Positions 163-59,080 of a DNA stretch of 64,000 nt are shown one piece after another. The position numbers were made by a program, and so were the translations under genes. How positions within the stretch are numbered: position 1 is the stretch's first letter; every line of letters starts with the position of its first letter. Under the pieces are notes generated by a model, which saw only the letters and a program-made list of their open reading frames with translations, was not told the origin of the DNA and ran no database searches. The stretch spans positions 168,927 to 232,926 of the forward strand of contig ADNK01000828.1 of assembly GCA_000320545.1 (NCBI GenBank). Reading direction: 5' to 3'. The DNA comes from Bigelowiella natans CCMP2755. Its lineage: Eukaryota > Protista > Cercozoa.

Positions 163-822
163 ATGGTGCCTTACGAGCGGCTTATTAGCCTTCTCCTCCT
201 CCTCCTCAGAGCTAGTACCACACATGCTATTAACATTACTGGTACTGGAGCTTCCTTTATGGACTGTGGTTCTGCGCCGTTGTGTGGTGAGACAAGCTTT
301 TTACAAGAAGCTGAAAGCTGTAAACTTTCCTCTGAAACTCATTTGAATTATTTAGGCGTAATGGTTCTGGAGACGGGTTACGGTATAGTCAACAATGCGT
401 GCTAAAAAACAAAAACAACAACAATATAGTGAATTTTTACTGCATTATAGGCCCATCAGCGTATCACCACGATGTACCATGCGTGCATGGAATCTGGCCT
501 CAAGTTGGAAGCTATGGCTCTTCCCAATGCATCGCTCCTTCTGACACCTCTGATCCAACTTCCATGGCTAGCTGTTATGTACGTTTATCTTCGTTGTGTG
601 TTTGTGTAAAGTAGTACAATATGGAGGAGAGCAACAACTGATTCGTCGTTTTCCACTTAAAGGATGATTTGAGCTTCATGACTCACGAATGGGAGAAGCA
701 TGGAACTTGTGCTGGTGTCAAGGACTCCGACGATTTTTTCAGCCAAGTTTGCTCACTATCAGCGCAGCCTCTCTCGGTGATGCAGCCTCTGAGGGCCCAG
801 GTAGAAATTGATGATAAAGCAA

Positions 823-863
<41 letters not shown>

Positions 864-1779
864 TATATTTGAGTATGTATTTGTGCGGTGTTGTTAGATC
901 ATTCTCCTCGTCCTTATATTGTTCAATTTATTATTAGAGTCAAAGCTTGGCCGACATGGCTAGTGCTTTAAAGAATGGTGGATATCCTGTTTACTACGTT
1001 GACGACGTTGACTCTCAGATCTACATATCTGTCTGTGCGTCCAACGACGGGCAGTGGAAGATCGCTGATGTCTCGCAGTTCTCGACTGTGTGCAAGGGTG
1101 GTGTAATTTAAACGACGGTGACTAATCGATTGTGTTAGCAGCAGCCGCCATGTAGTATTAGCATATATCTGTTTGAGTAGTAGTGATGATAATGTGTGGA
1201 TGATGGTATTATTATTAATCACAGGTACTGCACCTGCACCAGGACCGTCTCCAGGCCCTTCTCCCTCCCCTGGTACTACTACTAGTACTAGTAGTAATGA
1301 TAGTAATAGTATTATGATCAGTTGCGATGCTATAAATAAATTGATGATAATGCATGTATTTCCTGATGGATGCTCTCCTCCTCCCCCCCCCTCCAGGTGG
1401 AAGTAAGTGCATCGCAGACCAGCACGGCCCAGCTTGTTCTTCTGACTCTGATTGCACGCAATATGACTCCTGCATCCGCTGTGCCGGCTCTGGTTATTGT
1501 ACTTGTGTTGATGAGACCACGGGACAATGTGCTGCTGCTGCTGCTACCTCTGCTGCTCAACTATCATCTGCTACCACTCGCACTAGTAAATCTGCTTTGG
1601 CAAATGGTACTACTACGGGTATGAAACATCATCATCGTGGTGGCGGACTAGGCGGTGCACCGTACATGAATTGTGGATCTTCATCGTTATGCGGTACTAC
1701 AAACTAGTATTGGGTTATCATAACAACCTCGACGACAATCGTCGCTGCTAGTAGTGCTGTTTACTTGCTGGCAGGGATA

Positions 1780-1814
<35 letters not shown>

Positions 1815-2773
1815 CCACTAAAACGACATACGCGTAATTTTACATCGACGACTAGTTAGATGTTGCACGACTATTCGCTGCTGCTGCCGCTGCTGCTACT
1901 ACTACTAGAATAGTAATAATCATCGATGATCACACACTTAAATTGTTGATGGGATGTAGGTGTGTTGGTGCTGGAAAGTGGCTACGGTAAACAACAACAA
2001 CAACTACTACTACTACTACTACTACTACTGCTAATGATCTCTTTGTATACATAACAATGCACACTATTTTCTTTTTTAACTCCTCCTTCCGAAGCAACGG
2101 TAAAAGGAATGGTGATTGTTATCATTATCATCTTTAAACCTCCTCATCCATGCAGGCCCACCAGACTATCACCACGATGTACCATGCGTGCATGGAATCT
2201 GGCCTCAAGTTGGAAGCTATGGCTCTTCCCAATGCATCGCTCCTTCTGACACCTCTGATCCAACTTCCATGGCTAGCTGTTATGTACGTTTATCTTCGTT
2301 GTGTGTTTGTGTAAAGTAGTACAATATGGAGGAGAGCAACAACTGATTCGTCGTTTTCCACTTAAAGGATGATTTGGGCTTCATGACTCACGAATGGGAG
2401 AAGCATGGAACTTGTGCTGGTGTCAAGGACTCCGACGATTTTTTCAGCCAAGTTTGCTCACTATCAGCGCAGCCTCTCTCGGTGATGCAGCCTCTGAAGG
2501 CCCAGGTAGAAATTGATGATAAAGCAAGCATGTATAGATATATATTTGAGTATGTATTTGTACGGTGTTGTTAGATCATTCTCCTCGTCCTTATATTGTT
2601 CAATTTATTGTTAGAGTCAAAGCTTGGCCGACATGGCTAGTGCTTTAAAGAATGGTGGATATCCTGTTTACTACGTTGACGACGTTGACTCTCAGATCTA
2701 CATATCTGTCTGTGCGTCCAACGACGGGCAGTGGAAGATCGCTGATGTCTCGCAGTTCTCGACGAAGTGCTAG
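163..2773 (+). CDS. Secreted RNase T2 family protein with two tandem RNase T2 domains separated by a Pro-rich linker, a Cys-rich module and an Ala/Ser/Thr linker (multi-exon)
   Basis: Signal-like start MVPYERLISLLLLLLRASTTHA at 163. Both halves carry CAS-I (VHGIWPQ, ~484 and ~2189) and CAS-II (FMTHEWEKHGTC, ~675 and ~2380) with catalytic His/Glu/Lys/His intact. GT-AG exons join in frame from domain 1 (..SQFSTVCKG) through TAPAPGPSPGPSPSPG, GGSKCIADQHGPACSSDSDCTQYDSCIRCAGSGYCTC and GAPYMNCGSSSLCG|VLVLESGYG into domain 2, which ends SQFSTKC* (TAG 2771-2773). Confidence 0.85.
462..1086 (+). repeat. Copy 1 of near-identical ~620 bp intragenic duplication (RNase T2 core exons plus introns)
   Basis: Matches 2167-2763 almost base for base, including introns. 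The main difference is a (TA)n expansion at ~825-862 absent from copy 2. Confidence 0.95.
2167..2763 (+). repeat. Copy 2 of near-identical intragenic duplication
   Basis: Direct visual alignment with 462-1086: only scattered substitutions (e.g. ttgagc/ttgggc, ctgagg/ctgaag, attattag/attgttag). Confidence 0.95.
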
Positions 2774-2999
2774 ATATTCGAATTACTATGTAGAGATGCA
2801 ACTTTATCATAGAAATTTATCCTTTTTTCCGTCCCAATAGATATTGTTCAGTTGCAGAAGCTTATTCAAATTGTGGTGATTGAATGAACTTCGCATAATT
2901 CAAATGACACTGAATATTTTTGGTACTTCGCAACTGAAGATGTCAATCTAAATTCGACGAAGTTAAAACCGGTACGTTGTATTCAAAAAGTGCAATGTA

Positions 3000-3450
3000 A
3001 AACTAAACTGGTGAAAGCAAATAAACATATTGAGATTGTTACAAGTGCATTCATCAGCGCATACATGCGTATACAAGCGAACACTGCAGCTGCATGCATG
3101 GTGCAGCACCGGGTGTCATGCAAAATGATGCATTTTGTCCGCATCGGCAATGATGTCTGCATGTAGACGGTGTCAGATGCATCATCGCCAAAATGATCTA
3201 CAACTGGATGTTTACAACGTCGTTACAAGCTACTCTTTATCTATAGTAGTGACGGCCATGCGTGCTGCAAAGGCATGTAGAGTCATTTGTATGTAGCAAT
3301 AATTAACGGCTCAACGTGCAAGGATCAAAGCAAGGAGGTCCCATCTAGCTAGCCATGCCGGGGTGCTAACAATTAATGAAGCTTTTGATCAGTGTCTAGA
3401 GTGTGCCTTATTGTTATAATTATGTCTTCTACATATCTAGATATCTGGTG
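3000..3450. other. Weak palindrome-rich (TGCA/CATG/CTAG) island between convergent 3' ends
   Basis: gcagctgcatgcatggtgcagc, caaaatgatgcattttg (inverted arms), tctagctagccatgc, atctagatat. Lies between the RNase T2 stop (2773) and the SET gene stop (3503). Confidence 0.5.
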
Positions 3451-3502
3451 AGTTCAAATAATCGTTACAGCTGCGAGATCATTAGGCAGTAGACTTGTAC
3501 TC

Positions 3503-19111: not shown

Positions 19112-19383
19112 AATAGAAGGAGTATGGTGGTAGGAATTTTTAGTGGTAGAGGAGGAGGAGTTGTGGTCCGTTGGGATGATAAAACAAATGATGGTGACAT
19201 GTAGTAATATATGCTATCATGCCTGACTCATCAGTATTTTCCTCGACTAACTTTTGTTGGATGATGGTTTTAATCAAACAGATCGTGCATCCTGATCATA
19301 ACCACTCAAAGCCAGCAGCACAGAGAGCTATCACGGAACGTGCCTTCACCGCGTTAACCGAAGCACTCAAGCAAGAAGCTTGA
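11035..19383 (+). CDS. BAR domain - TPR repeats - auxilin/Swa2-type J-domain protein (multi-exon)
   Basis: ATG 11035 MDFLKKGLASASK.. helical BAR-like region ending LVDNRFSIFDECFVRLMETQ|VSYYEKAAEMV (~12660). TPR exons ATAEMYKKAGVAAFKESHFEE|AVTEFGKAL, SCLSNRAM, LINRGFAYEALGK|MQEALNDF (13.8-15.4 kb). C-terminal ALDQWEFR|GGIRKDLMALLSGL, VGLGDLQDPNARKKYFKKAML|IVHPDHNHSKPAAQRAITERAFTALTEALKQEA* with HPD motif. TGA 19381-19383. Some middle exons are approximate. Confidence 0.8.
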
Positions 19384-19599
19384 AGTGGAGAATACTAAAT
19401 ATTACTACAAAGTATTGAACATTCCTCAGAAGTAGCTAGTGAAGATTATGGGCGGGTGAATTGTAATACGCCAACTGATGAGATATATGATTATATCTCA
19501 ACTTGAACGTGGGAAGATTGTACCATTTGCAATCATGGTTATATATCTTCATGCGTGTGGCTAAGAAGAGTCTGCGTATTTTGATTTTATACTTTCAAA

Positions 19600-20060
19600 T
19601 TGTTCGAACCACGTCGACTAGTCGACTGCATGTGGAATTGTTATTCCAGGCACAATAAGCATGAATAAATGCACATACTGACCCATAAGTGGAATAGCGC
19701 TGATACGATGCCCTTAGCCCTAGTCTAGTCGTAGTGCCCATGCATGATGCGCGCATGCACGCCTAGACGAGTAGACAAAAACGTACGTGCTTTTTCAGGT
19801 GCTTAGCTAGCTAGCTAGCTAGTTGCCAAGTTTGCCGCATGCATCGTAGTGTTGACCTAGATGTGGGTTCGTGAATAATCACTTGAAGCACATGCTTGCA
19901 TATGATAGACATGCAATACACTATATATATAATATATATTGTGTATTGCATGTCTAGATGTTTAGATGCATGCGTATGTGCCTAGCTAGCTAGCTAAGCT
20001 AGCAGTGCGCCGTGGTTTTGTTTGTTTCTAGCCTGCGCCCTCGCCTAGCGCCAATAAAGC
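19600..20060. other. CTAG/TAGC/CATG palindrome and hairpin island between convergent 3' ends
   Basis: Perfect palindrome GTCGACTAGTCGAC (19613-19626). Perfect 16-bp inverted repeat TAGACATGCAATACAC (19906-19921) / GTGTATTGCATGTCTA (19941-19956). (TAGC)n runs at ~19805 and ~19983. Confidence 0.85.
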
Positions 20061-20751
20061 AACATGCGCGCCGACGCGTATGCGCACTTAAAGTTGTGCG
20101 TATCTGCAGACAACTCAGAACTGTGGATGTGAGTAGGAGGCACAACAGATGCTCGTCGTCATTAATTGCACACCGCCAAAGCAGATCGATGATGATGTCG
20201 GAATGGTGCTCAAATGATCGAAGGCAGTGCTTGCAGCCATGCCATTTCGCAAAGCCACCTCCCTTCCCCTCCTTCTGCTAGTCTGGTAAGGCTAGAAGGG
20301 AGCAAGTTTGAGAGGATCGACTCTGTGTCCTTTGGATGTCGCTCGTGAACCAGCAGCAAGGCGAAAAAAAACAAATCACCGCCTCCAAGGGAAATGGTCG
20401 GCACAACGCTGTTAGCGGTGGAAAAACATTGGGAAGTTAACGGGCTATAGAGAGAGACTCCAGTCGTACTAATCAGGATCAGTACAAAAACGGAAACAAA
20501 GCTAAAAGAGGTATCCCAAAGCTAAAAGGAATTCATTTGTAAAATCATGAATCTCAATGCTGTTTGTGTCATAGGTAGGCCGTAAAAGTAGTCACAAAGA
20601 TGCGAGAAGCGGATAATCTGCAATAGCCCCGATTTTCAACTATGCAAGCAATCGTCGTCGTAAATCTGATTCTTCCCAATCGCATAAGAGAATTGAATAA
20701 ACCAAAAACGCGCGGACTCATCCTTCCGGGAGTCGGGTGAAGGCAGAGGGG

Positions 20752-22568
20752 TTAGGTAGTAGCTGTGCGCGGACAGGGCAACAGAAGTGGACGACAACGA
20801 GAATCGAGAAAAGTGGAATACGCGGTCACAATGAAATCAAAACTAAGAGGAAGAAGGAAGCAGGTTCTAACTCTCTTCCAAACCACCATTTTTTCCGTGA
20901 TACTTAGCGCGCGTTGTGTTGCTTCATTGCCACTCAGGGGCGGCACTGCGATTTCATGGAATCTTGCGGAATGTGCACAATGATGATTATTTTCATACAA
21001 AATATAGGTATTATATATATTTGGATATTTGCTGCGCCTTGTTCGCTCGATCCCTACTATGTAGGTATATATTTGATAGCTAATTTTTTTTTAAGGCGGA
21101 AATTATATACTTCATTGAACAACCATCTCATGAAGGAACTACATGTATACATCCATGCCCGTGATAGTATTTCTCAATTTCTGTCTTCTTCACTTCGGTG
21201 TCGGCTACTGCTACGGCTCTTGACTATCAACCTGACACTATTTTTCTCAGAAGATTCCATACTTACATACCACGGTAGCAGTGGGCTAATGTATGAAGTA
21301 ACCGCCTTGACAGGAGCAGAGGCTGCAGCATCAGCTAATGCGGATGCAAAGCTTGCGACGATCGAAACAAAGGCGGTGGGTTGGATTTTTGCCGTCGTAA
21401 TATCTCTAATGGTAGGGATATTATTTCTGCTTTCAAATGTCTCATCATTATCATCATTATCATCATCATGATTCTTTGTTCGTTTTCTGGAAGTGGTTAG
21501 GCCTGTTTGACGAGAGAACCCTGCACTATTTTTTCCATAAACTCTACAATTGCTACTATTTACACTTGTAATATTGCTTGTGATATTATTACTAGAAAAA
21601 GAATTACCAGCGCTCTGCTGCTGGTGTTGTTGTTTTTGCCGATACCGGTCCTGATGATGTTCCTCCATCAAGATCATCTTTGGAGCAGCAGCTCGTAGGA
21701 GGGTTTGGAAAATTGGTTGCTTCCCTCTACGGTCAAAAACTTGTTGATGCATTGGCACTATCTCCATCTGATTCTTATAATACTCTTCATCCCCATCACT
21801 GTCGTCAGAGAAAATACCCTTATACCATGCTACGTTTTCCAATCCGTCAAATACTGCTGCGGCTTCATCCGTATTTCGCATTTCTTCAGGTAAATTAATT
21901 CCCCCAAATAGCGCCACATCAACATTTCGCGGACCATCATATCGAAGAAATGCCCAAGAAAGAGTAGGAAGAAGTCCTAAACTCATGCCCCCTAATAGTG
22001 ATTTCTTAAAGATCGCTACTTCGCTGAAATGTGCATCAAGACGACGCTGGAAGTAATCCGTTGCTGCCCGCGAGAAAGCAGGATCTACACGAGTATCACG
22101 AAGTGCCTCACGGTCAAGCTTATGATATTCAGCCCAGTAGTGAGCAGTGTGCATAACATTAGTTATCGAATAGTGGCTCTTTCCGTCGAAACAATCACGG
22201 AGCTTGAGTGAAGAATCCAGCATCTCAAGAGTGGCCACACGTTTGCTGTGATCCACCAAAAGTAGTCGCAACCTATTTCGTCGTTCCATCTAGAACATCA
22301 GATAATTGTGAGTGCTAATTATGAATGAAAATATAAATCAGGCAGTGTTAAATCTGAAGAAGTTACCACAAGAATGTACCTCTAGGTCGTGAGCACTAAC
22401 TGTTGACCAGCCAACCCAGGTTGCCCTTGCCGCCCATGCAACAGATTTCCGCAATCGTGTCAAACGTGTCGGAGCAGCCAATGCAACCAAAACACTTCCA
22501 GCGGAGAGGTGAGCCAGAGGCACAACTTCCTTTCTGAAGATGTCTACTCGGGGGGTGGAGGATGCCAT
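20752..22568 (-). CDS. Hypothetical protein (orphan, intron-poor); 3' end approximate
   Basis: Exon 1 MASSTPRVDIFRK..AHDLE|gtacat splices in phase 0 to ttctag|MERRNRLRLLL.. (371-codon open frame 21174-22289 with a globular-looking N-half). Probable donor at PLLPW|gtatgt. Downstream exons uncertain. No family recognised. Confidence 0.65.
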
Positions 22569-30067: not shown

Positions 30068-32435
30068 TTCTCGTGATTGAAACCAATAAACAGCATCCCA
30101 AGACATCATCTTCTTCTTCATCATAGTAGTCTCTGTCTGAGTGAATGATGATGATGAAGAAGCACAAATGACACTCTTTCCCTTTGTTGATGGACAACAG
30201 GTGATGGAGTTTCAGGGGACTTCTGAAACAGAGTCATTGTCAAAAAGAGGAGGAGGAGGAGGAGTAGCAGGAGGAGGAGGACTAGAGTTATCATCAGCGG
30301 CAGCAGCAGCAACAGCACTTGGAGGTTCATCCTGCTCTCCTCATCATCCAAGGGGGGGGTTGATGAAAGAAGCAGCAGCATCACCGAATAACACCGCTGG
30401 TGATCAAGGTAGCCATGATGCTAATATTACTAATACTGCTACTGCTGCTGCTGATGATTCTCATCCACAATTAGATTCAGTGCTGCCAAGAGGAGCAAAG
30501 TTGTTGGAAAACACAATAACAGCAGGAGAAAGAGGACCATCGTCGTCATCATCACTTCCACCTCAAAGAGAACAAGAAAGGGAACACCCAAAGGCAACAG
30601 CACTAATAATTGAGGTATCAGCAGAAGCAGCAGCAGCAGCAGAACTTCGCACACAAACAAGCCACACCATATGCAATGTCGGTGACCACGACAACGGACT
30701 ACATCAGGTGAATACTAGTGCTAGTAGACCCAAAGAACATCAAGAAGAAGATGATGATGAAGCAGCACAGCAAAAGAAGGGAAAGGACAAGGCTGCTGGT
30801 GACGATAAAGGAGGAGGAGATGGTCGTGAAATGGCTAAAGTCTCAAGAGAGGGCATTAATGGAGGAGATGGTCGTGAAATGGCTCAAGTCTCAACAGAGG
30901 GCATTAGTAATAAAACATGGGTTGATTCTGTTTCTGAAAAAAGAAAGAAGATGATGATCACGAAGAAGCACCAGCAAACAGATTCGACCACTACAGATGC
31001 TACATCATTTTCTCCCCCTCCTACTTCTTCCACTGTGGTAAAATTACCTTTAGAGATTAAGAAGCATCTAAGAAACAGTGTGCACTACAAACTGCTAAAT
31101 TATCATTATGGTAATTATTCGGATAATAATATACGGCGAGCAACCTCCTCGCTCTCCTCGTCATCGAAGAAATTTGCTGTTCTTTCCTTTCAACTAGACA
31201 AGATTACATCCTCGAAGACCTTTCGAGGTAGCAGTAAGAGGAGCAGCAGTAGTAGAATTAAGTACGGTTATTTAGTTAATCAATTTATCATAGCATGTAT
31301 CATCATCATTATACTGTGATAATAATATGTGGTGGTGGAACTTTTCCATGCCCCCCCCTTTAAAACGTTGTCTATTATTTTGTTCTTTTCATTAAGTAGT
31401 GTTAATGGTACATTAAGATGTGCATAATTCACCATTTGTGTCAGGTGGGGAGATAAACCTAACACTACGAGTAGCTTTGTCCGCATCATCATCATCGTTA
31501 TCATCATCTTCATCTGTGGACGGAAAAAAGGAGATAGACGAGAGCCAAAAAAAAGGAGTCGAAGAAGCAAATGAAAAAGAAAAAGGAGGAAAAGTAGTAC
31601 GGAAAGAGAGGCATAATGATTCCCTTCCTCCCCCATCTCCATGTCTCTTTCTCAGAGCTTTGGAAAAACCTAAATTCGAAGTTTTTCTTAAAAAAGCTGC
31701 TCCTGCTACTGCTGCTACTACCGCTGCAATAAGTGTGGCTAATGGTATTGCTCCTCCTGCAGCTGTCTCAACTCCTCATAAAATAGTATCAGGATCGACA
31801 CCAACATCAATCACACACCCGTCATCGGTATTATCATCATCATCTTCTTCTTCTACCTCATTTACTGATTCTTCTTGCTGGACGAAAGGTAGGAAGTAGC
31901 CTCATGCATGCTTCTAAGTAGTATTATGTTTGTAGTCAGTAATAAATACATCAAACAACACAACGCGCACAAAAGAAGCAACACAACAGCTAATGTTACC
32001 GGTGATGATAATGATGGTATGGATAGTAACAGTACCATCATCATGTAGTTCACGTTGATAACCAATGACATCCTAGCCTTGTTCATGTTATTCTCTTCAA
32101 TCTCATCCTCATCCTCATCCTCATCCTCCTCATCCTCCTCATAATCATTGTTTTAGTTGACTCTACGGTGACAATTGCTTCCCTGCAAAAAGAAGAAGAT
32201 AATGATGTTGTTACCATTAACAACGATGAGGATATTGGCCTCGAAGCTAATGATGGAATAAGTAGTGATAACACCAACTATTCCTATTTCAAAGTATCGA
32301 TTTCATTCTCACTTGATCACAACCACTACTACAATTTTGCTTCTTCTGACTCTGCTCCAAAGCATAGCATGAAGGTACTGTACTTGAGCCACTACTACCA
32401 TCTCGCACTACCACAACTATTTTAAAGTGAGATAA

Positions 32436-36313: not shown

Positions 36314-36801
36314 ATATAATTGTTATCGTTATGATCATCATTGATTACACTATCCTCGTCGTTTGTATCTAACACTACTCTCCCTTCTTCCCCCCTCACT
36401 TTTGCTGTCGTGATTCTGAATTCAAAGGCATGCTACAGGTGGTACATCCATTAGGTGGAGAGTCCTTTCGTGCAGGGTCCAGTCTTAAAGTAGAATGGAC
36501 GTATTCTGGAAACGTCGGCACATATGTGTCAATTAAGCTTTTTCGGGCATCAATGTCACAAGAGGTGGTGGGACTGATTATGATAAATAAGAAAACTACG
36601 TGATTTCGAAAGAGGCTGATCCAATTGAAGGGATCGATGCTGTAATGAGATCTTCTTGCGAAGTGTTTGCTGGTGGTATTGGATTGGGGGGTAGGATGGA
36701 AGATAGATGAAGCAAGAAATTCAGAACCTGCTAACAATGTAACTCCATTGTCGAATATAATTGAAAGGGATTCGAAGAGGAGAACCTTGAAGCAACAATA
36801 G
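23317..36801 (+). CDS. Very large chromatin-associated protein: chromodomain, C2HC Zn finger, AT-hook, CxxC-H-H-C motif, second chromodomain, GATA-like C4 finger, coiled coil, long low-complexity exons, C-terminal beta-rich domain; start and single-gene status uncertain
   Basis: [35 protein letters not shown]|AENL (23.63-23.81 kb). FQCN|ICNRYFRAPQGLARHMKGC (24.08-24.27 kb). KHGRPRKH (~24570). CPACQGKHRAHIC (~25400). IYPVER|LSDRRHGSDQIEYLVEWMGQPEAYNSW|EPAENI (26.36-26.9 kb). CADCGSKHSGWGTN|RWVGMEKYKRPLCVRC (27.4-27.7 kb). The last plausible stop is TAG 36799-36801. No 3'-type island interrupts the span. Confidence 0.7.
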
Positions 36802-37199
36802 CGACTTTCGTTAACGTACAGAGGTGTGAATTTGAGGTCACACTTCCTATAAACTTACGGCCTTCAGATTGCTACAGGTGATTCTTGTCAACAATTGCTA
36901 CGTAGGGGATAACATTAGCTCATATTTCAAATATTAGGTTGGAAATGGCATCCCACGACAATCCAATTGTTTGCGGTTACAGTAGATATTTTTCCGTTAC
37001 ATCCGCTTTTTTCACATAATTAACGTTGCTGTTTCGATTAAAATATTCCTCAATGTAAAAGTCAAGAGTTGAGTTGAAAGGTGAAGCATTTTTAGCAATT
37101 CACCCGTCTCGTTATTACGCAAAGCTAGAAAGAAACAGAACGGCGTGACATCATCATTCATGCATGATTGTTCATCATCATTTAAGCTACTAAAAACAT

Positions 37200-38200
37200 G
37201 CACTACTCTCTAGACTCCAGCTAGCTAGCCATTCCCATGTCAAGAAGTCATTGTGCAGATTCATGCGGCAAGGTGGCCATCCAAATTTGATGTGCTGTGT
37301 GGACTGTCCACAAACTTCATGATCTAGACTAGTAATTCTAGAGATGACAAAGATGTTCAAAGTTTGTGCGCAAATGAACATGAACCATGCTTTTCATTGA
37401 GCTGTGCTAGTGTGGTCCAGTGGTGGCCAGCTTGCGAAGCTACATTTTTTTGAAGCAACTAGCTAGCTAGTAGGTGAGCAGATATTGTTGCAACAAAGCT
37501 CTCTAGCTCTGCTGCTCTGGAGCTAAGCTAGCTAGCTAGTACGCTCTAACTAGCTAGCTAGCGCTACTCAAGCAATGCTAGAGTGCTACAGTGACATGCT
37601 CTAGTGGTGCTGACAACCGACACTAGATAGCTAGCTAGCTAGCTAGGACAGCTACGCTAGTACGCCTTCATTCTAGCTTTGTCTAGTCATGCTAGCATGC
37701 TAGCATGCTAGAATGCGTGAGAATGAACGTGCCAGACACAACTAGCTAGCTAGACAAATGTGGGCATGCTAGCATGCCTACTAGCCTAGCTGTAGCTAGC
37801 TAGATGCATTCTAGCATTGTTAGATTGCTAACTAGCTAGATTGGGCACGGCGAGCGCTGAGATGTCTAGATGTGCATCTAGCTAGCTAGCTCTAGAGCTA
37901 TGATCCACACACCTAGCTAGCTAGACATTTCTAGACCTTCTTGCTGGAAGATGCTAGAATGTTTCATCCACAGATCTAGAGATCTAGAGACTCTAGAGTT
38001 GAATCTGATGCACGCGAGCAGTGACAATGTCACTCATCAATCACATGACAAACAACAACGTGTAGCTACACTAGAGTAGACTTCGTGTCTGATCATCTTC
38101 TCACTGTCTTTTATTCACGAGATGGTTACTCTGTGGTGTGCATGCTGTAGCAGACCAGACCAAAATGTCATTGCAACTAGCTGGCAAAGAAACTGCATCG
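37200..38200. other. Strongest CTAG/TAGC/CATG palindrome island, between convergent 3' ends
   Basis: Many (TAGC)n runs. (CATGCTAG)3 at 37688-37711, AGTGACA-A-TGTCACT at 38020-38034, GTGTAGCTACAC at 38060-38071, GTGGAC-T-GTCCAC at ~37300. Confidence 0.9.
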
Positions 38201-38289
38201 GTCACGTCTTGCAATTTAATAATACGATGATATAGAAGGAATGTACAATGGAGACTAGGGTGCGAATCAACCAATCGTCGTCGTCGTCG

Positions 38290-39007
38290 TTAGCCAGCAG
38301 TTGGTCCGACTCCGGTCCAGCTGAAATACTTCATTCTACCTGCAGCTCTGTTGAGGAACATATCAATTGTGTGTTTGTTGTCATTGCATCGTCATCATCA
38401 TCATTAAGCATTCACATGTGCTTCACAAATAGTTTCTCAAGTCGTACTACCTTTTCCAGCTTGGCACGCAGCTCTTTACAGTCATCAAACCCGCATAAAT
38501 TAAGCACAAACACCCCACAATAACGTACACCGATCCCAAAAAGAAATTTTCACCCCCCAGAATAGTTACAGTTGACAACATGACGTGCTTCTCGCCGTCA
38601 AAATCTGAAACTCGGAAGTTGTTTTGTATTGTCAGCTCAAGCGTGTCCCCTGCTTCGAAATCCATATCATTGATCTTGCGATGTAATTTACTGAATCTTG
38701 GAAACCCGGCGACACGAAACCAAACTCTAAATTCTTGAGAAGTCGGAAGTGGTAACGTATTGCCCTCTGTTCCAATTCTCGAAACGTCCTGATTTTCATT
38801 CGGAAAATGTTGATAAAGCCTGACTCAAACGAAATTAAACGATACATACATCATATTGAGTTTTAAGGAAAACTATCTTTGTACCGCCAAGTCGTCAGGA
38901 TTTGAGATGTTCAGAAATTTGTCATCATCAGACTCCCATGCAATGTCACTGCCGTCAAAATTCTGAAGTGATATTTATACTATGTGCATGCTTGTGTGTA
39001 TGTGGAG

Positions 39008-45509: not shown

Positions 45510-45970
45510 TACCTACTGCTACCATGTGTTGGAAGCTAAGTGGAGGTGAGAGACAGCGAGTGGCATTTGCTCGTCTATTTTTCCACAAACCGACGTTTGC
45601 GGTTATAGACGAGGCAACTGCTGCAGTAAGTGCTCTAGGCGAGGTAGTAGTAGTTGTAGCAGTAGTAGTATTAGTAGTAGTAGTATCCGTTTTCTCACAA
45701 CAGTAGCGCTCAGAATCCTTGCTGATGTAAATATTTATGATGTTTCAGGTGGAGCTTTATGAACAATTGAATAAAGTCAACTGCACAGTCTTTTCTATTG
45801 CCCATCGTGTCTCCGTTAGGTGAAGAATGCAACGACGAGCGAAGTTCATTGATCAGCGTAAACGATGCATAATGTTTTATTATTGCAGGAAATTTCACCA
45901 GCTTGAGCTTGAGTTTGTTGGTGATGGCAGTGGAGGATACAATTTTTATAAACTTGGAGATAAAGGTTTG
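40357..45970 (+). CDS. ABCD: ABC transporter subfamily D half-transporter (peroxisomal fatty acyl-CoA importer type); final codons uncertain
   Basis: [11 protein letters not shown]|ENPL..; [12 protein letters not shown]; [12 protein letters not shown]|[16 protein letters not shown]; EAA motif [23 protein letters not shown]; Walker A GPNG|[14 protein letters not shown]; [15 protein letters not shown]|VTYP; signature [19 protein letters not shown]; Walker [11 protein letters not shown]; H-loop FSIAHR. Confidence 0.95.
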
Positions 45971-46379: not shown

Positions 46380-46414
46380 ACATGCTATCAATGGTCATGC
46401 GTAGCTGTGCAAAG

Positions 46415-46452
<38 letters not shown>

Positions 46453-46830
46453 CGAGAGAGAGACAGAGAGAGCTAGATAGACCTAAACATGAGCCCATCT
46501 AGCCATGCTAGCATGTCTGAGATGTGCTAGTGTGGCACGTGCGCATTGCTCTAGTGCTTTGTGCATGCATATGTTCATGCATACAATAAACAAACTTAGC
46601 GCTGTAGCCACCGCATTCACTAGTTCATTGCATAGCTACATTAATTTGACTGATGATTGAAATTAATAAAAGAAAAAATGTGATCATTTCATTCATCCGC
46701 CGTCTCACATATCGAGATGCGCCAGTCATAGCTAGATAGCTAGCATAGCCATAGCGCTAGATAGTACGTCATACGTCATGCATGACGAAGCGCACTTTCC
46801 CGATGCTAGCTAGCTAGCTAGTAGTAGATG
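46380..46830. other. CTAG/CATG palindrome island between convergent 3' ends
   Basis: CGTCATGCATGACG perfect palindrome at 46774-46787, gctagatagctagcatagc, (TAGC)n at ~46806, many gcatgc/tgca motifs. Lies between ABCD (+) and MIF (-). Confidence 0.85.
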
Positions 46831-47059
46831 GATGATAGCGACTGCGATTGACATATTTTTAAGCGAATTTTGGAATCGGAATCAGAGTTGGTCTTTAGCA
46901 GCTGATAGCTATTTCATGGGAATCTTGGACCGTTTTATCATAAGAGTTGACAGGGAAGAAGGACATTGTCTTGTATGCTCTGTACACTACTTTCCTCAAA
47001 GAATCCTCATTATCCCATAAGCTAATAATTTCAATGCTCACTTCAGGAGAATACGATTA

Positions 47060-48304: not shown

Positions 48305-48395
48305 TGTGATTCGTTTGTTCCTTCGCACGGAGGGAAGAGGGAGAAGAAAGGGCAGCAAAATCTAATTATTTGCCTGCGACAAAGGGAGACAGTAT

Positions 48396-48498
48396 GTCTC
48401 ATCTGATGAAATGCATGCGACAATGAAGAAATCATGTCTCATCTGATGAAATGCATGCGACAAGGAAGGACATAAGGTCTCATCTGATGAAATGCATG
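48396..48498. repeat. 3 x ~40 bp tandem repeat with palindromic cores just upstream of MIF
   Basis: GTCTCATCTGATGAAATGCATG at 48396, 48436, 48477. Each unit contains TCATC-T-GATGA and ATGCAT. Confidence 0.9.
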
Positions 48499-48956
48499 GA
48501 TAAGGAAAACATCATGACGATCTGAAACATCGTTTTTCACAATGCTTAGCGATGATGAACTTTCTCCAATCTAGGACATTATTTTACGATGTTTGTGCGA
48601 TGATAAAGCTTTACCTTGATTTCCATGGATTTCGAAGATCATCCACTGGAGAACGATAAAGGCAAATTGGAGCGTTAATTGTCGCTGTATCCCTTAAAAT
48701 TCCCAAATTAGAAACGTGAAGATAATTTGTCGAATTAAGGTTGTCGCAGTCGGGATTTGCTGCACTTGCAAAACTAAGAAAATGTTCTCTGACGGCATGT
48801 CTGCTCGTACATTAAGCCATAAAGCCGTTTCGTAAAAATGGCACCCATTTGTAGGAAAAACGGTGATAATCTCGGCGGTAGATCAATCTTTCTCCTCCTC
48901 TGTTCTCCCGAGCCGATGACAACTGTGCATGCTGGAATGGTTGGTTCGGCAAAATG

Positions 48957-49580
48957 GCGAACCTGACAGTCGGAAAGACGGCCGGTCATGGCATGGGGCC
49001 GCAATCCCAGACCCGGAGCTTCCATTTTTGCAGTTGCATTTTTGCACTTCATCACAGCAGAAGCTCGTCGCAACACACAGGAGTGCGCGACCTGAATGCA
49101 ACTTGATCAAAAATGCATGCGCTGTCACCAGGTCAGTTCAGCCAATCCAGTTATAATGAGCGAACCTGGCAGTCGGAAAGGCCTGCTCTAGTGCTAGCCT
49201 GGCCTGGCTCAGAGCGCAGCTGAGACGGCCGGCATGGCTAGATGGCTTCATGGGTGCCGCAACACCAGACCCAAGCTAGCAAGCTTCCATTTTTTGCAGT
49301 CACGTTTTTGGCACACAGATGCGATTTGCATCACGTCACTGAACCACTCAACCCAAAATTGTGATGTGACAACCACGCGACCACCAGACCAAACAGTCCA
49401 AACCACAAACTGATGACAGCCGGAACTAGAGAGAGACGGTCGGCATCACTACTAGACTAGATCACACAAATCACTCAATCGCTAGATCGAACATCGCTAG
49501 ATCGGGTCGCAATCCTACCTAGCCAGACCCAAAGCCAAGCTCTCATCTAGTCATTTTTGCAGTTGTGTTTTTTGCAACCA
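48957..49580. repeat. Three degenerate direct repeats (period ~200-250 bp) of increasing length
   Basis: Shared anchors cag(t/c)cggaa, gacgg(c/t)cgg, g(c/t)cgcaa..ccagaccc, agct, catttttgcag, tttttg(c/g)a at ~48967, ~49170, ~49417. Confidence 0.85.
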
Positions 49581-50120
49581 CAGACACGGTCGTGCACTCT
49601 GCATGCACGACGTGCATTGCATCGTGTGTGCTAGCCATTTGTTGCAAGCAGTCTAGCAGTGTGCACGATGACTTGCATGCGCACAATTGCATGCTGGCAT
49701 GGCCTAAATGACGCGATCATTGATTGCGGTAGAGCAGCAAGCAATGATGATCATGATGGGGGCACACATTGCGAAGTGCATCTAGCTAGCTATGACTACT
49801 AGCTAGATCTAGGGTTGTGTGGGCAGTGAGTGTGCAAGAACACGTCGTGCATGCTAGCATGGATGACCATGCTAGCATGCCTGCGCTTCGTTGCGCCCTG
49901 TGCTAGTATGCAGCATGGATGCAAAACTAGCAGAACAAGCAACGAGTGTCACATGCACGCGCATGATCGCTAGATCGATACGAAATTTTGTGAACAAATC
50001 GATTTGTGGCAAGTGAACAGGCATTCAACTTACACATTGCTACATGGACAGACACACTAGTCAAGCATAGTGCTGCACATCATGCACATTGTAGAGCATT
50101 ACATGTATTGTGTACACGCA
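49150..50120. other. CTAG/CATG palindrome island downstream of a minus-strand 3' end (tandem junction)
   Basis: CATGCTAGCATG twice (~49850, ~49870), GTCGTGCA..TGCACGAC (~49590-49612), tctagctagctatgactactagctagatctag. Lies 3' of the gene ending at 50324. Confidence 0.85.
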
Positions 50121-50323
50121 TCTTAATCATTGAAAGTTTAGTAGTGCTCATTTCGTTCGCGCTGTTTCGAGACACTATGAAGTGAGGTATCGTTGAATGC
50201 TTTACTTAATTCAAGATCAAAAAGATGTTCGTCGATGCTACGGTAAGAAACCTGATCCAATAGCAAGTTTAAGTCAAAACAAGATAGCCTGAAAGACACA
50301 ATAATAAAGTACCAAATTAAGGG

Positions 50324-50712
50324 CTAGTGCAATTCGAAGCGCCAGTTGATGTTTGCAACAATGTACTTTTCCATCCTGTATCATCTGTTATTTATTCAAA
50401 AAATGACGTCTAAAATGAAATAACGTCAAACAGCAGTACAATAAACCTTGTATCTCTGGTAGAAAAATGCAGAGCACTGGCACCATTCGGAAGATACTCG
50501 ATAGTATGAATTAGAATCGCTGCAGCAACAAGAACGAGGGGGGAAATAAATTTAACATCGAATAGGTACGGTCAACATTTTACTGCTATTACTATTACTA
50601 TTTGATAAAAAATCATCAGCAGCAAGGATACTACCAGCCGATGGCATCTTTAGCATGACTTGTTTTCACCTAGATTAGCCATCAAATTGGTCGCGCTAGC
50701 CATATAATATAA

Positions 50713-50748
<36 letters not shown>

Positions 50749-51639
50749 GTGCTACGAGTTGTCTTAATGACAGACTTACTTCCATGATGCAGCGTCGCAA
50801 TATTTGACTAAAGGTTATCCGTACACAGCTGCTGGAACTGCTGCTGCCTCCTGGGTTTTGGTGATAAAAAATATTCGTTGCCGATGAAACAAAATGACAG
50901 GGAACTTTTAGTAATGGGGGATTTCCAGGAGTACCAGCTGATACAAATTCAACATGGAGAAGAGATTGGGAGGATGGGGAGGAATGAATCAAAAAACAAA
51001 GTTGTAAATTAGCAGGTAACCAACTCTTTTCTCCCTCATTTTTTAGGTCGTCGCCTTTTGCCTCTTCTTCTTCTTCTTCCTTTTTGTTGTTGTCCGACAC
51101 AATGATGCCGCCATCCTCTTGTAGCTCCAAACCAAGAATACTTAAGGCCTTGGAAACCAATCTAATGATGAACATATACACACATGTAACAATAATCTGA
51201 TGTAATAATGAATGACTTGGCTAGAAGATTCGGTGTTGTCATTCATCAGACAACAATCATGGCTTTGCAGCTGCTGCTTTCTTGTTGTTGTTGTTGTTAT
51301 TGTGCTATCATGTTTCAAATACAACTCAGCTACACAAGTTCGTCGTCACATTACTCAGTCACTCAGTGACTGATACTTTGATGTCACTCTAGAAATTTCA
51401 CACACACACACACACACAAGCACACACTTCTTACATATATAATGGTACAGGCTAATACTTACTAGTGAGTGTTGGTAGAATATGAATAATGATTGATATT
51501 TGTTCTCTCACTATAACTATTTAGCTCTTAGTTGTTCTAAACACAGCAGGTATACTTGTTCTTTAGTAGTAGTAGTATTACTAATTGTCTAAGGGGAAAG
51601 CTGACTATGAAGTGTCTGGTGTAGTACTACGAAGTAACT

Positions 51640-51685
<46 letters not shown>

Positions 51686-54000
51686 AAACCACCACCTGTA
51701 AGAGAAAGCAGTGACCAAAAGGTCAATAACTTGGGGTGTGAGCAATGAGTAGTAGGAACACGTGGAAAGAGAAAGGCTTCCGTGGTTAGAATGAATGGAG
51801 GAAGAGGAGATATTTGCCAAAGCTGCTTCGTCGTTAGAATGAATAGATAAGGAGATATTTGCCAAGGCTTCGTCACAAAGCTCAAAGATAGTAGACTCCT
51901 ATTAAGTGAGGTGGATGTCAATATAAAGCAATATTGGTTCCTTCTTCCAATGCAATGAGATAGGTGTATGTCAACTGTGGTTCCTTATTCCATACCAATG
52001 AGATTATTCGGATAACTAACTCTAGCATTATTACCGTGACATCATTATCTTTAATTCCAAATTGACTTAAAATTTTGTGAGGAAGTGAAATACCTACTTG
52101 ATCATCACCATCAGCAGCAGCACACCATCACCAGTTGCAAACAGAATATGATGATGATGATGGATGATGATGGTGACAACGACGTCCAACTATATATTTT
52201 ATTTTACCATTCAGTATCTACTAATTATAAAAGACTACTACTCATTCCGAACAAATGTTGTAGTAGCTGTAACCTTCCTCTTTCTTGTTCTTCCTTTTTA
52301 TTTCTACTACTACTACTACTTCTACTACTACTACTACCAATATAACAACTACTGCACTCACTCTGCTCTACTACCATAGTTTTTTCAATACCGGGACGAT
52401 AATGAAGAGATACGTTTGCACTTGGATATTTGAGTTCTAAGAGTTTTCCTCCACCACCTTGAATCATTGCCTAATTGATATTTGATTGGATATGTCTGAA
52501 TTACTGCGCTAGTACTTGAGTTATCTTTCAAGCAGCAATTACTTCAGTATTAATACACTACAACAACCTTATATAAACAAATTATTAGTGCTATTATTTC
52601 TGAAACAACACCTTGATCGTACATGGTTTGACACTAAATCTTTTATCAACCTGACGCAAATATCAGCACTGAACAATCAATAGGACAGAGCTAGATATAC
52701 TACTACTACTACATTCCTTTATTGCTACTACTACTACTACCAATCCTTGATCTATCAGAGTCTGTATATTAACGCCTAGACCATTCGCCATTTCGTAAGT
52801 TATCCTCTTTTTAATTATCGTTATCATCAACAAAACAAATAAGGTGTTACGATGATGCACATGGTCACTTAAGGAGGATGATGCAAGCTGAAAGAAACTC
52901 GCAAGATAACATGTGTATCTGCTGGTGCTGGTGCTGGTGCATGGTTGTTGTTGCATATGAAGAACTTACATGTTTTTTTGGTATGGAGTCTAAAACCATA
53001 TTTTGGTCTTTATCTAAGGGCGCAGCAGCAGTTGCTGCTATCGATAATCCATCATGTTCGTCATTCTCGAAGCAGACACTTGCGATTGCTCCCCTGACGA
53101 GTAACAAGCGGAGGCGGAGGCAAACAAATAACCATCAGAGAATATCATCTAACCCCTCATAACATGCATAAAATAACTATTCACAGGCACGAAACAACAG
53201 CATGCGGAAATACTATTTACCATCTCTTTTTCCCACTTGAATCGCTCACACAAACTATTTGGCCTGAGGACATGCAGGCGCTTTTAAGTTAGTCTTCTAA
53301 CCATGTCTGGATCCACTTCAATACAGTGAGTGCTGCTCATTGATTTGATGTGTGACTGGTTTTTTGATCATGATGATGATGCTTATTTGCTACTTACTTA
53401 CTTACTTACTTAGTACGTACCTTCTTGAGGGATAGTGGGGTTTAACCCTGGAAGAAGGAGCCTACTTGTACTTGGAGAAGGTAGATGATAACACTATAAT
53501 CATCATCATCGTCATCTTTTTACACTAAATATTTATACTCTTCTACCGAGCGAGAAGCTGGAACCAATTATTGGGAAAGGTGGGGCATGTCTGCCATAAG
53601 AATGAAACGATAATGTATGAGTACGCGACAAAGTACAGTAGCAGCAGAGATCAATTAAAAGCATGGAAGACGAAAATGGTGCTTACTTCTCTTTGTACAG
53701 CGTGAGCAAGCCAATTCCCTGAAGTGATATTCAATGTGTGATAAAGGTTGAGCTGTGCAATCCTGGAGGAAAGGTGATGAGCTCTTCTTCTTAAAGAAAA
53801 CCCATCCAAAATCCGGAATGAATCAGTTAATAGGAAGTTTGTTACTGCCGCAATTATTCTCAAGCTTCTTTCATTGCGGTGAAAGGTCAGGAGTGACGTT
53901 TGTTTGATGCCCAATAATCTATGTATTCATTCATGTTCATCTTCATTCTTCCAGACGATCGATCTCCCCCATTGGACGATCCGTTGAAAGAGCGAATAGG
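50324..54000 (-). CDS. Hypothetical multi-exon protein (orphan); 5' end approximate
   Basis: Chain of phase-compatible GT-AG exons: ..NWLAHAVQRE|TCPTFPNNWFQLLA|RTSRLLLPGLNPTIPQE|AALTVLKWIQT|WPNSLCERF|KGAIASVCFE..; a large exon 50.76-51.15 kb; final AILIHTIEYLPNGASALHFSTRDT|RMEKYIVANINWRFELH* (TAG 50324-50326). No family recognised. Confidence 0.6.
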
Positions 54001-54249: not shown

Positions 54250-57549
<3,300 letters not shown>

Positions 57550-57879
57550 GAAACTAAGACTTTCAGCTTAGCCTTGAATAAGCAATGAAGACGATCCAAA
57601 TTGAGTTTCAAACTTGAGAGATTCAGGCAACAAACTAAATTTCGCTTGAATAGCCAATTTTTAAAGACAACCTGCGTTTCAGAGCCCGAAACTTACTGAA
57701 TACCGCCATGGAATGTGTGCTACTGAGTGAGGCATGTCAGTGCGCACGCTCTATCATGGCGTAGTCTTGCCTCAGATACGACATTATGGGAAGAATGTAA
57801 TGAATATGTCAAATTTTTTCAATAATAGTCATTCTAATATTGTTAGCTCTGCCAAGATCTCAGCGGCGACATGATAGAC

Positions 57880-58430
57880 ATGCAATATGTTATATGTATG
57901 TTATATTTATTTGACACATAGCTTGCTAGACAGCTCTGAGAGCTACATGAGTATGACTGCTGTAATTAAAATGTTAATAATAACTTCAGCACACAATTGC
58001 ATCACATCCTTCTCGCTACTACTAGACTAGAGTAGGCTAGCTCGTTGTCCTTTGTTAGCCATGCAATACTAGCTATAGACTAGAATGTGCTGCTATGCTC
58101 CTGGAGCACATGTGCTTCATCTGTTCGTTTCCATTAGTATGTCGTCTTTCATGCATCAAAAGCATCAATTATGCAACAGACACACATCAGACGCATGTGC
58201 AGCGCACGTATACGTTCATTTCATGCATGCATCATCACATCATCACTCGATCGTTGCTCAGTAGTATAGTAGCACGCATTTCATGGCGGTACTCACTAGC
58301 TCAGTCTAGCAGTGCACATTACAGTTCAGTGGACAACAATGAACAAATCAGATCGAATGCTCTCAGCGCGCGGATCCTGCTAGGCTGCGTCGCTATGATG
58401 AAAGTCATTGTGTGCGAGATTGGAGTAGTA
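57880..58430. other. CTAG/CATG palindrome island between convergent 3' ends
   Basis: actactagactagagtaggctagctc, tactagctatagactag, atgcatgcat, agctcagtctagc. Lies between the MTase stop (57549) and the sigma stop (58498). Confidence 0.75.
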
Positions 58431-58497
58431 TAGGTTACTTTTTACTGAAGTGTGTGAGAAATGTCCAACCGCATCATGTAATAGACTAAGCTTTTCT

Positions 58498-59080
58498 TCA
58501 CGCTTTCTTCTCTACTTCTGCAAGATAGTTCATACGAGCTAAAATTACTTTCTTACTTGATTCTTGGAGCTCGCCAGCGAGAAAGAATTCATCTAAGAGA
58601 GCGAAAACCTAAGAGTAGAAGTTGCTTCATCAGTCCATTCGTAGAGTTGCGTCACATAAGCGTCACATAAGTGTCACATAAATGTAAATGTTACCTTATA
58701 AAATCCAAAGACAAGATCCAGTTCGCATACATCAACGAAGTAGTCGTCGAGGCATTCAACAAATAAATGAATTGCTTCAAGCATAGCCATCTCGTTGTCG
58801 CTTGGGTCGCAGCAAATTGTGAAGAACACACCCTTATACCGACGATAAACAAGAGTATAGTTTCGAAACTCCACGAAATTGGTGTACTTTGAAGGCCTAT
58901 CGTTTAAAGAAACCACTTCTCAGATTTTAGGTTTCAGTTTACTCGCATGATTAACCTTTGAATCAACGTTCTGTAGATTTCCGACTGAAGTTTTTTCTTC
59001 TCTTCGTGTTCGAACGACGAATACCATTTGGCAATTCGTGTCTGGCCTTGACGATTTTGAAGGATAAAGAAGTGGATCAT
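58498..59080 (-). CDS. AP2S1: AP-2 adaptor complex sigma subunit (divergent)
   Basis: Three exons: [42 protein letters not shown]|[67 protein letters not shown]|[52 protein letters not shown] and LDLVF.FYKV are sigma-2 type. Confidence 0.93.
58649..58681. repeat. 3 x 11 bp tandem repeat in sigma intron 2
   Basis: GCGTCACATAA GCGTCACATAA GTGTCACATAA. Confidence 0.9.

Follow-up and report, generated by a model that had tools for sequence, protein, structure and literature searches.

The window analysed here is a stretch of 64 kb of nuclear DNA from the rhizarian alga Bigelowiella natans (CCMP2755, contig ADNK01000828.1, positions 168,927–232,926); all coordinates refer to the window. It contains intergenic islands rich in the tetranucleotide CTAG, which lie on the 3′ sides of genes and are piles of insertions of the form N4-CTAG-N4 (a CTAG between two copies of the same four bases, termed scars below) with an enzyme-like target preference. 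The window has a G+C content of 40% and abundant di- and trinucleotide microsatellites (120 tandem-repeat rows). Published gene averages for B. natans are 8.8 exons of 159 bp and 7.8 introns of 184 bp (PMC12730881). Genes were anchored by homology (Pfam, orthologs) and by RNA contigs; about 70 genic open reading frames (ORFs) were scanned with Pfam and only some genes were anchored. The RNA contigs L001, L003 and L004 are from B. natans, L002 is from a related chlorarachniophyte and L005–L009 are from an unrelated marine picoeukaryote. Donor-site hexamer counts per strand did not predict the strand, even for genes of known strand, and Rfam gave no matches across the window.

At the focal locus the 3′ ends of a Kre9/KNH-like gene (E3) and of a CDC50/LEM3 gene (F) both face one island. 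Four further strong islands were located, giving the set 19.6–20.1, 37.2–38.0, 46.45–46.83, 49.15–50.06 and 57.9–58.4 kb, together with a weak sixth at 3.05–3.45 kb; in 200-bp bins the CTAG count peaks at 19.6–20.0, 37.2–38.0, 46.4–47.0, 49.4–50.0 and 58.0–58.2 kb. A preliminary description of this DNA had named six islands with a vocabulary of their own. This was borne out for the five strong islands (3,065 bp), which hold 116 of the 244 CTAGs against 128 in the remaining 60.9 kb (log2 enrichment 4.18, ~18-fold), but the sixth, given there as 3.0–3.4 kb, is weak, with four CTAGs and one exact scar. The islands and their features, to none of which a strand applies, are as follows.

37030–38446: focal convergent spacer between the E3 stop and the F (CDC50) stop; CTAG island core ~37125–38000
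37100–38250: counts for the focal island, 57 CTAGs (49.5 per kb), 12 exact scars, 28 CTAGs in tandem arrays
37121–37132: scar AAAG-CTAG-AAAG, 96 nt beyond the E3 stop, in the E3 3′ untranslated region (UTR); covered by L004
37631–37646: (CTAG)4 array; further (CTAG)4 arrays at 19807–19822 and 46806–46821
37688–37711: (CATGCTAG)3 array with 20-bp perfect palindromes, read as three successive insertions at one CATG target
37862–37873: scar ATGT-CTAG-ATGT; the 4-mer is reused at 19950–19961 and its reverse complement occurs in L002 at 2039–2050
37887–37900: example of an GCTCTAGAGC palindrome
3050–3500: weak island past the second RNase T2 gene; 4 CTAGs; exact scar ATAT-CTAG-ATAT at 3433–3444, one 5-nt variant AGTGT-CTAG-AGTGT, and CCAT-(CTAG)2-CCAT
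19384–21176: convergent spacer between genes C (+) and D (−); island ~19430–20300; 19 CTAGs, 4 scars
46380–46900: island downstream of the ABC gene G (+); 13 CTAGs, 6 scars; nested CCAT and CATG scars offset by 1 bp at 46495–46519
48901–50140: island and TpA-erased block by the 3′ end of gene I; 24 CTAGs, 11 scars; degenerate triple tandem repeat at 48957–49580
57550–58497: convergent spacer between genes J (+) and K (−); island ~57920–58390; 9 CTAGs, 3 scars

The island vocabulary is real and far beyond chance. CTAG is under-represented outside the five strong islands. The word CTAGCTAG occurs 29 times in the window against 0.8 expected, and is absent from L005–L009, which served as a negative control. 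Within the islands AGCT, CATG, TGCA and GCGC show 3- to 9-fold enrichment (3- to 80-fold if GCTAGC-type hexamers are included), and the purine-rich vocabulary of exons and introns is lacking. Perfect palindromes and hairpins, also part of the preliminary description, were confirmed: of perfect palindromes of at least 12 bp other than (AT)n, the spacers (6.4 kb) have 38 and the other 57.6 kb has 27 (~12-fold denser in the spacers), and CTAG is the centre of nearly all those in the spacers. On folding, a 291-nt island core gave z = −3.5, with none of 200 dinucleotide shuffles as good; a divergent-junction control gave z = −1.5. The C/D spacer also contains a 51-bp near-perfect palindrome (19906–19956, 48/51) with a (TA)n centre and TAGACATGCAATACAC arms.

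The signature on which the analysis rests is an exact 4-nt direct repeat flanking CTAG. It was found at 38 of the 199 CTAGs outside arrays, whereas shuffled pairing of the flanks gave an expectation of 1.6. When all 256 tetramer cores were compared, CTAG was the sole outlier (15.6% against a background of 1.0%; the next core reached 5%, with n = 2). Other core lengths and flank lengths gave no comparable signal in the window, and plain 4-bp tandem duplications were not enriched in the spacers. Twenty-five different 4-mers are duplicated around single CTAGs, examples being ATGT-CTAG-ATGT, TGTG-CTAG-TGTG and TACG-CTAG-TACG. Scars with one mismatch number 17 against 11 expected, an excess of ~6, from which a typical divergence of the scars of ~2% may be roughly estimated. 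Tandem duplication of an existing N4CTAG was rejected as the origin, a scar being 1.5 copies of an 8-mer and not two. The preliminary description had also considered a scar of recurrent breakage with snap-back repair. A mutational process rather than a conserved motif array is indeed indicated, but snap-back synthesis would give inverted copies of the flanks, and what is found is a 4-nt direct duplication around a constant CTAG, of the kind that a transposase or integrase leaves.

The event itself can be read from the degenerate triple repeat at 48957–49580. Copy 1 has no CTAG, and copies 2 and 3 carry the 8-bp CTAG insertions CAAG-CTAG-CAAG, ATGG-CTAG-ATGG, TCAT-CTAG-TCAT and ATCG-CTAG-ATCG at places where the sister copies hold a single 4-mer. 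Since the copies differ by CTAG plus N4, the event was an insertion of 8 bp, that is, CTAG together with a 4-bp target-site duplication.

From the 38 scars the empty sites were reconstructed. The duplicated 4-mer never begins with G and never ends with C (0/76, counting both orientations), C or G is favoured at positions −1 and +1 of the duplication, and A-rich and T-rich positions follow further out. The target consensus reads as weakly palindromic and enzyme-like; dimeric transposases and integrases typically show weak palindromic consensuses of this kind. CATG, with six sites, was hit most often. CTAG and AGCT are allowed as targets by the base rule, and TAGC and GCTA are disallowed; the rule therefore predicts extension of (CTAG)n and the formation of GCTCTAGAGC palindromes, both of which are seen. 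The perfect palindromes of 12–20 bp are thus probably by-products, either scars with a palindromic N4 or arrays.

The scars are confined almost entirely to one kind of position, 37 of the 38 lying in 6.06 kb of 3′-side spacers and one (at position 103) in the remaining 54 kb. Exact scars are absent from the five divergent junctions (2.9 kb) and from the short tandem junction. The introns defined by RNA contigs (3.1 kb) hold nine CTAGs and no scar; they are rich in di- and trinucleotide repeats yet scar-free. As an 8-bp insertion would be harmless in an intron, the process is either aimed at gene ends or passes through an intermediate tolerated only there. This one exact scar beyond the defined spacers (TCAT-CTAG-TCAT, 99–110) is close to the window's left edge and upstream of the first RNase T2 gene; its context extends beyond the edge and is possibly the 3′ spacer of another gene.

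The genes against which these positions were judged are the following.

A1 and A2 (+): RNase T2 domain matches at 642–869 and 2347–2571, both against the same profile region
C (+): J-domain HPD motif; stop at 19381–83
D, 21177–22568 (−): JGI model 86999; the 371-aa ORF at 21174–22289 (−) is 100% identical to EukProt jgi/Bigna1/86999
E3 (+): Kre9/KNH-like; last two coding exons 36766–36878 and 36936–37029; ortholog P0006, MMETSP ORF P0008 and L004; stop at 37027–29
F (−): CDC50/LEM3; last coding exon 38447–38824; Pfam PF03381, E = 5.6e-30, profile positions 180–282 of 286; stop at 38447–49
G (+): ABC signature at 45536
I, 50091–53994 (−): 15 exons; RNA contig L003 maps to 53994–50091 with 100% identity
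J (+): methyltransferase motif I at 55673
K (−): AP sigma subunit, Clat_adaptor_s, E = 5e-24; stop at 58498–500

The islands at 19.6, 37.2 and 58 kb sit between verified convergent stops, the island at 49.2–50.1 kb adjoins the verified 3′ end of gene I and that at 46.4–46.8 kb comes after the end of gene G. CTAG reaches 9–50 per kb in 3′-side spacers, 2.5–4.3 per kb in the five divergent junctions and 1.9 per kb in the genic remainder. The claim in the preliminary description that head-to-head junctions are free of islands stands, none of the islands lying in the five. An island at every gene 3′ end had also been claimed. All islands do lie past 3′ ends, and most of the flanking genes were checked, but the probable tandem junction between A1 and A2 (about 1708–2057) has none; islands only on the 3′ side of genes is the safer wording. 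A division into five convergent junctions and one tandem junction holds for the three islands named first and otherwise hinges on the strands of genes B (3.5–10.3 kb) and H (46.9–48.9 kb), so that the labels of the 3.0–3.4 and 10.3–11.0 kb junctions and the choice of 46.4 or 49.2 kb as the tandem case are provisional.

Some observations on individual genes are added here. The two RNase T2 matches in 300–3050 suggest tandem genes, of which A1 seems to end at the TAG at 1705–1707 and A2 to start near 2058. L001 (30473–31823) runs unspliced through an in-frame stop at 31317–19 and for 500 nt more into a second ORF, which points to a retained intron or to a gene model longer than the ORF suggests; its last 285 nt (GAAGCTTCGAGAATCTTCCAGAA-like repeats) have no counterpart in the window, so that L001 is possibly a chimera. 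L004 keeps, at 392–448, the 57-nt last intron of E3 (36879–36935), so that a stop follows directly after the exon 36766–36878; P0008 represents the spliced form. At 48371–48516, bordering region H, a 40-bp unit (consensus TGCATGCGACAAGGAAGACATCATGTCTCATCTGATGAAA) is tandemly repeated in 3.6 copies within a low-TpA stretch.

Slippage of a (CTAG)n tetranucleotide microsatellite, combined with compositional drift of non-coding DNA, would be a natural suggestion in a genome this rich in microsatellites, all the more as (CTAG)2–4 arrays exist. It is nevertheless very hard to credit. Only 45 of the 244 CTAGs sit in tandem arrays, 38 isolated CTAGs have variable duplicated flanks, and slippage can neither make single CTAGs between 25 different duplicated 4-mers nor exclude G and C from the respective ends of the duplicated 4-mer; introns, though filled with di- and trinucleotide repeats, hold no scars.

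A second process has left its trace in some islands. A TpA-specific A:T-to-G:C hypermutation of foreign DNA (TpA to TpG/CpA) has been described in B. natans (bioRxiv 10.64898/2026.01.13.699255), with thresholds of at most 0.43 for Rho TpA and at least 1.52 for Rho CpA+TpG and a cluster threshold of 3 kb. The block 48901–49900 has 52% G+C, a CA+TG value of 1.63 and a TpA observed/expected ratio of 0.14 with CTAG excluded, or 0.49 (above 0.43) with CTAG included; it thus reaches the hypermutation values in full only with CTAG excluded, and at 1 kb it is shorter than the cluster threshold. This block contains the degenerate triple repeat, with a unit of ~200–265 bp. In the focal island the non-CTAG TpA ratio is 0.31 and CA+TG is 1.24, a depletion of TpA only, and the islands at 19.6, 46.5 and 58 kb have normal ratios of 0.76–0.87 and fall outside the hypermutation thresholds. 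Mixed pyrimidine–purine runs of at least 10 nt occur at 4.1 per kb in 3′ spacers and at 1.0 per kb elsewhere; runs such as ATGCGCGCATGCACGC at 19747–19762 look like (TA)n tracts after TpA transitions. Hypermutation plausibly adds CATG, TGCA and GCGC words in two islands by editing (TA)n, CTAG persisting. The text of the preprint (10.64898/2026.01.13.699255) does not mention CTAG, 'palindrom' or islands at gene ends.

Two islands TpA-erased in the manner of old mobile DNA, one of them with a degenerate triple repeat, might suggest that the islands derive from a single dispersed family of transposons or MITEs, fragments of which went in without regard to gene orientation, the scenario that the preliminary description had set against its own reading. 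BLAST of each island against the window returned nothing in common beyond (CTAG)n, CATGCTAGCATG and a few words of at most 21 bp. With no long homology between them, the islands are not copies of one element, and the spacer ORFs contain no Pfam domain. A dispersed family is, within this window, as improbable as slippage, and both are effectively excluded.

Transcripts show that the islands are not consistently outside mRNAs; in the comparisons that follow, the ends of L002, L003 and L004 are contig ends and not mapped polyadenylation sites. L004, from a B. natans strain that is 1% diverged, maps to 36766–37390 with 99% identity and crosses the first scar and the first CTAG arrays of the focal island. 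As it reaches 37390, 361 nt past the E3 stop, the left part of this island is 3′ UTR. L003 extends 47 nt beyond the stop of gene I. L002 carries the ortholog of E3, its conserved exons having 77–91% nucleotide identity to the window (69% for the long exon at 34 kb). In the 370 nt after its stop it has 12 CTAGs and three scars (ACTG, ACAT and ATTA), against three CTAGs and no scar in 1,803 nt of coding sequence. The contig spans the whole orthologous spacer, and its far end resembles the far side of the window spacer (a 17-nt match with 15 identical), while the spacer sequence itself does not align with the window spacer. Since L002 has an island at the orthologous gene end without aligning, the type of island is conserved and its sequence turns over. 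The C-terminal 15–18 residues of E3 and its ortholog are also unrelated (L002 1755–1803, window 36968–37029); the divergence begins exactly at a CTAG of L002 (ATCTAGACATC), and a CTAG insertion may have rewritten the coding end.

These results bear on whether the islands are selected functional elements, such as bidirectional terminators, insulators, binding or modification platforms or all-frame stop arrays, which insertion merely writes. The strict 3′-side position, the recurrence of such an island behind the orthologous gene in spite of turnover, the end of L003 33 nt ahead of the first island CTAG and the excess hairpin potential all speak for such a role. Against it, the number of CTAGs varies 6-fold between islands (9 to 57) with irregular spacing, a probable tandem 3′ end has no island, and mRNA ends are not consistently marked, the E3 mRNA running at least 361 nt into its island and L002 through its entire spacer. 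A neutral model, in which gene ends are a safe haven, accounts for the position equally well. A selected role is improbable. The terminator or insulator proposed in the preliminary description found no support, and the island sequence is not conserved between species.

The scars are, on balance, somewhat better read as excision footprints of a putative cut-and-paste DNA transposon with a 4-bp target-site duplication and CT..AG ends than in any other way. Repeatedly, CTAG was added and four target bases were duplicated, N4 becoming N4-CTAG-N4, by an enzyme that cuts its target with a 4-bp stagger. An element with 5′-CT...AG-3′ ends would, on excision, leave two bases of each end between the duplicated target. 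The excision footprint of Tc1, TA-CATG-TA, follows the logic proposed here for the CTAG filler. Re-insertion into older scars and favoured targets (CATG, CTAG, AGCT) would give (CATGCTAG)n, (CTAG)n and GCTCTAGAGC, and such products could account for nearly all of the perfect palindromes. An element of several kilobases would wreck a 184-bp intron or a promoter and would be tolerated only behind gene ends until excised; the scars probably survive only in 3′ UTRs and in the spacers behind gene ends, either because the element is targeted there or because its intermediate is tolerated there.

Several observations weigh against excision. A search of the 64 kb for an intact element (CT..AG ends, inverted terminal repeats, 4-bp duplication) detected none and returned only microsatellite noise and array artefacts. 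A literature search found no superfamily that pairs CT..AG ends with a 4-bp duplication, and we know of no such superfamily that has been described. The footprint is unusually uniform, variant fillers, which are normal for end-joining, being essentially absent. To explain the scar-free introns, the insertions would have to be targeted or the intermediate to be under selection, and (CTAG)n arrays with even n call for a further event such as slippage. Finally, there is no sign of present-day activity, as over 361 nt of island the two B. natans strains (1% diverged) do not differ by the presence or absence of any 8-bp unit, and the 21 de novo indels published for mutation-accumulation lines include no +8 N4-CTAG event (10.64898/2026.01.13.699255, Table S2).

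The same table lists 14 de novo insertions (nine of at least 2 nt), of which seven end in ACA: GACA, CAACA, ACA, TGTTTGTAACA, ACACA, TACGCGCAACA and CATTACA. One multinucleotide change is TGGC to AACA. This recurrent ACA signature is odd and unrelated to CTAG.

The extreme uniformity of the product would also suit an insertion made in one step that is not a footprint, in which a host or viral nuclease makes 4-nt staggered breaks at gene ends and both overhangs are filled in and then joined, CTAG being the constant filler; in a variant, cutting at ^CTAG with fill-in would lengthen arrays one unit at a time. The lack of a donor element in the window and the occurrence of (CTAG)n arrays with both odd and even n are consistent with this, and the genome carries giant-virus and virophage DNA. 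However, we know of nothing that would provide staggered breaks with the same 4-bp filler every time. Simple 4-bp duplications lacking CTAG are not enriched, so generic fill-in of staggered breaks is not happening in the spacers, and the weak palindromic target consensus suits a transposase or an integrase equally well. One-step insertion is the strongest of the alternatives, yet it is unlikely. A more speculative form, in which B. natans and related species possess an active or domesticated integrase-like system that targets the 3′ ends of genes and writes CTAG in one step, and the cell uses the arrays, for example as orientation-independent terminators or insulators between convergent genes or as six-frame stops, so that position reflects function, is doubtful and ranks slightly below the selected role considered above.

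Three further mechanisms were rejected. Topoisomerase-II-like fill-in of staggered breaks is ruled out by the lack of enrichment of plain 4-bp duplications. Footprints of the hairpin-opening (hAT/RAG) type would yield variable inverted copies of the flanks, whereas CTAG is constant. An IS630-like mechanism, with CTAG as the specific target and TA duplicated, is ruled out because the duplicated part is the variable one.

If the scars are excision footprints, they testify to a mobile element of high activity in a rhizarian alga, with a landing or survival zone at gene 3′ ends; we know of no well-studied transposon with such a zone. By our extrapolation, 38 scars in 64 kb would correspond to tens of thousands of events in the 95-Mb genome. 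Scars account for the conspicuous palindrome-rich CTAG/CATG blocks of Bigelowiella intergenic DNA, so far undescribed: no paper on CTAG scars or gene-end palindrome islands of Bigelowiella was found, and searches on footprints with 4-bp duplications and on CTAGCTAG in intergenic DNA gave nothing relevant. The scars also offer a simple sequence marker of gene 3′ ends and convergent junctions in a genome that is hard to annotate, and the signature is directly searchable in other strains, in mutation-accumulation lines and in other chlorarachniophyte genomes.

Among known systems the Tc1/mariner-type footprints (TA-CATG-TA of Tc1 and the 6-bp footprint of Minos) are similar in that a duplicated target surrounds a constant short filler derived from the element ends, the target preference is weakly palindromic and the footprint outlasts the element. 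Unlike these, the CTAG scars duplicate 4 bp of almost any sequence instead of TA, the filler is CTAG and not CATG or CAG/CTG, the product is almost invariant, and the scars reach ~6 per kb and build whole islands, with no donor element found in the 64 kb. Sola and Chapaev make 4-bp target duplications, and piggyBac and Kolobok duplicate TTAA, piggyBac excising precisely. Ginger1 transposons have a 4-bp target duplication and TG..CA ends (PMC6839031). All five share with the scars the length of the target-site duplication; the CT..AG ends suggested by the scars are unlike the TG..CA of Ginger1, and the scar targets are unlike the TTAA of piggyBac and Kolobok.

TpA hypermutation is comparable in its long-term signature (TpA depleted, TG+CA raised) in the islands at 48.9–49.9 and 37.2–38.2 kb, but it makes substitutions only and leaves the 8-bp insertions unexplained, and TpA is at normal levels in three of the five islands. 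Base J at trypanosome strand-switch regions and cohesin at convergent genes of fission yeast resemble the islands in their position between convergent 3′ ends. These are chromatin or base marks without a sequence scar, whereas the islands of B. natans are known here as an insertion signature in the primary sequence.

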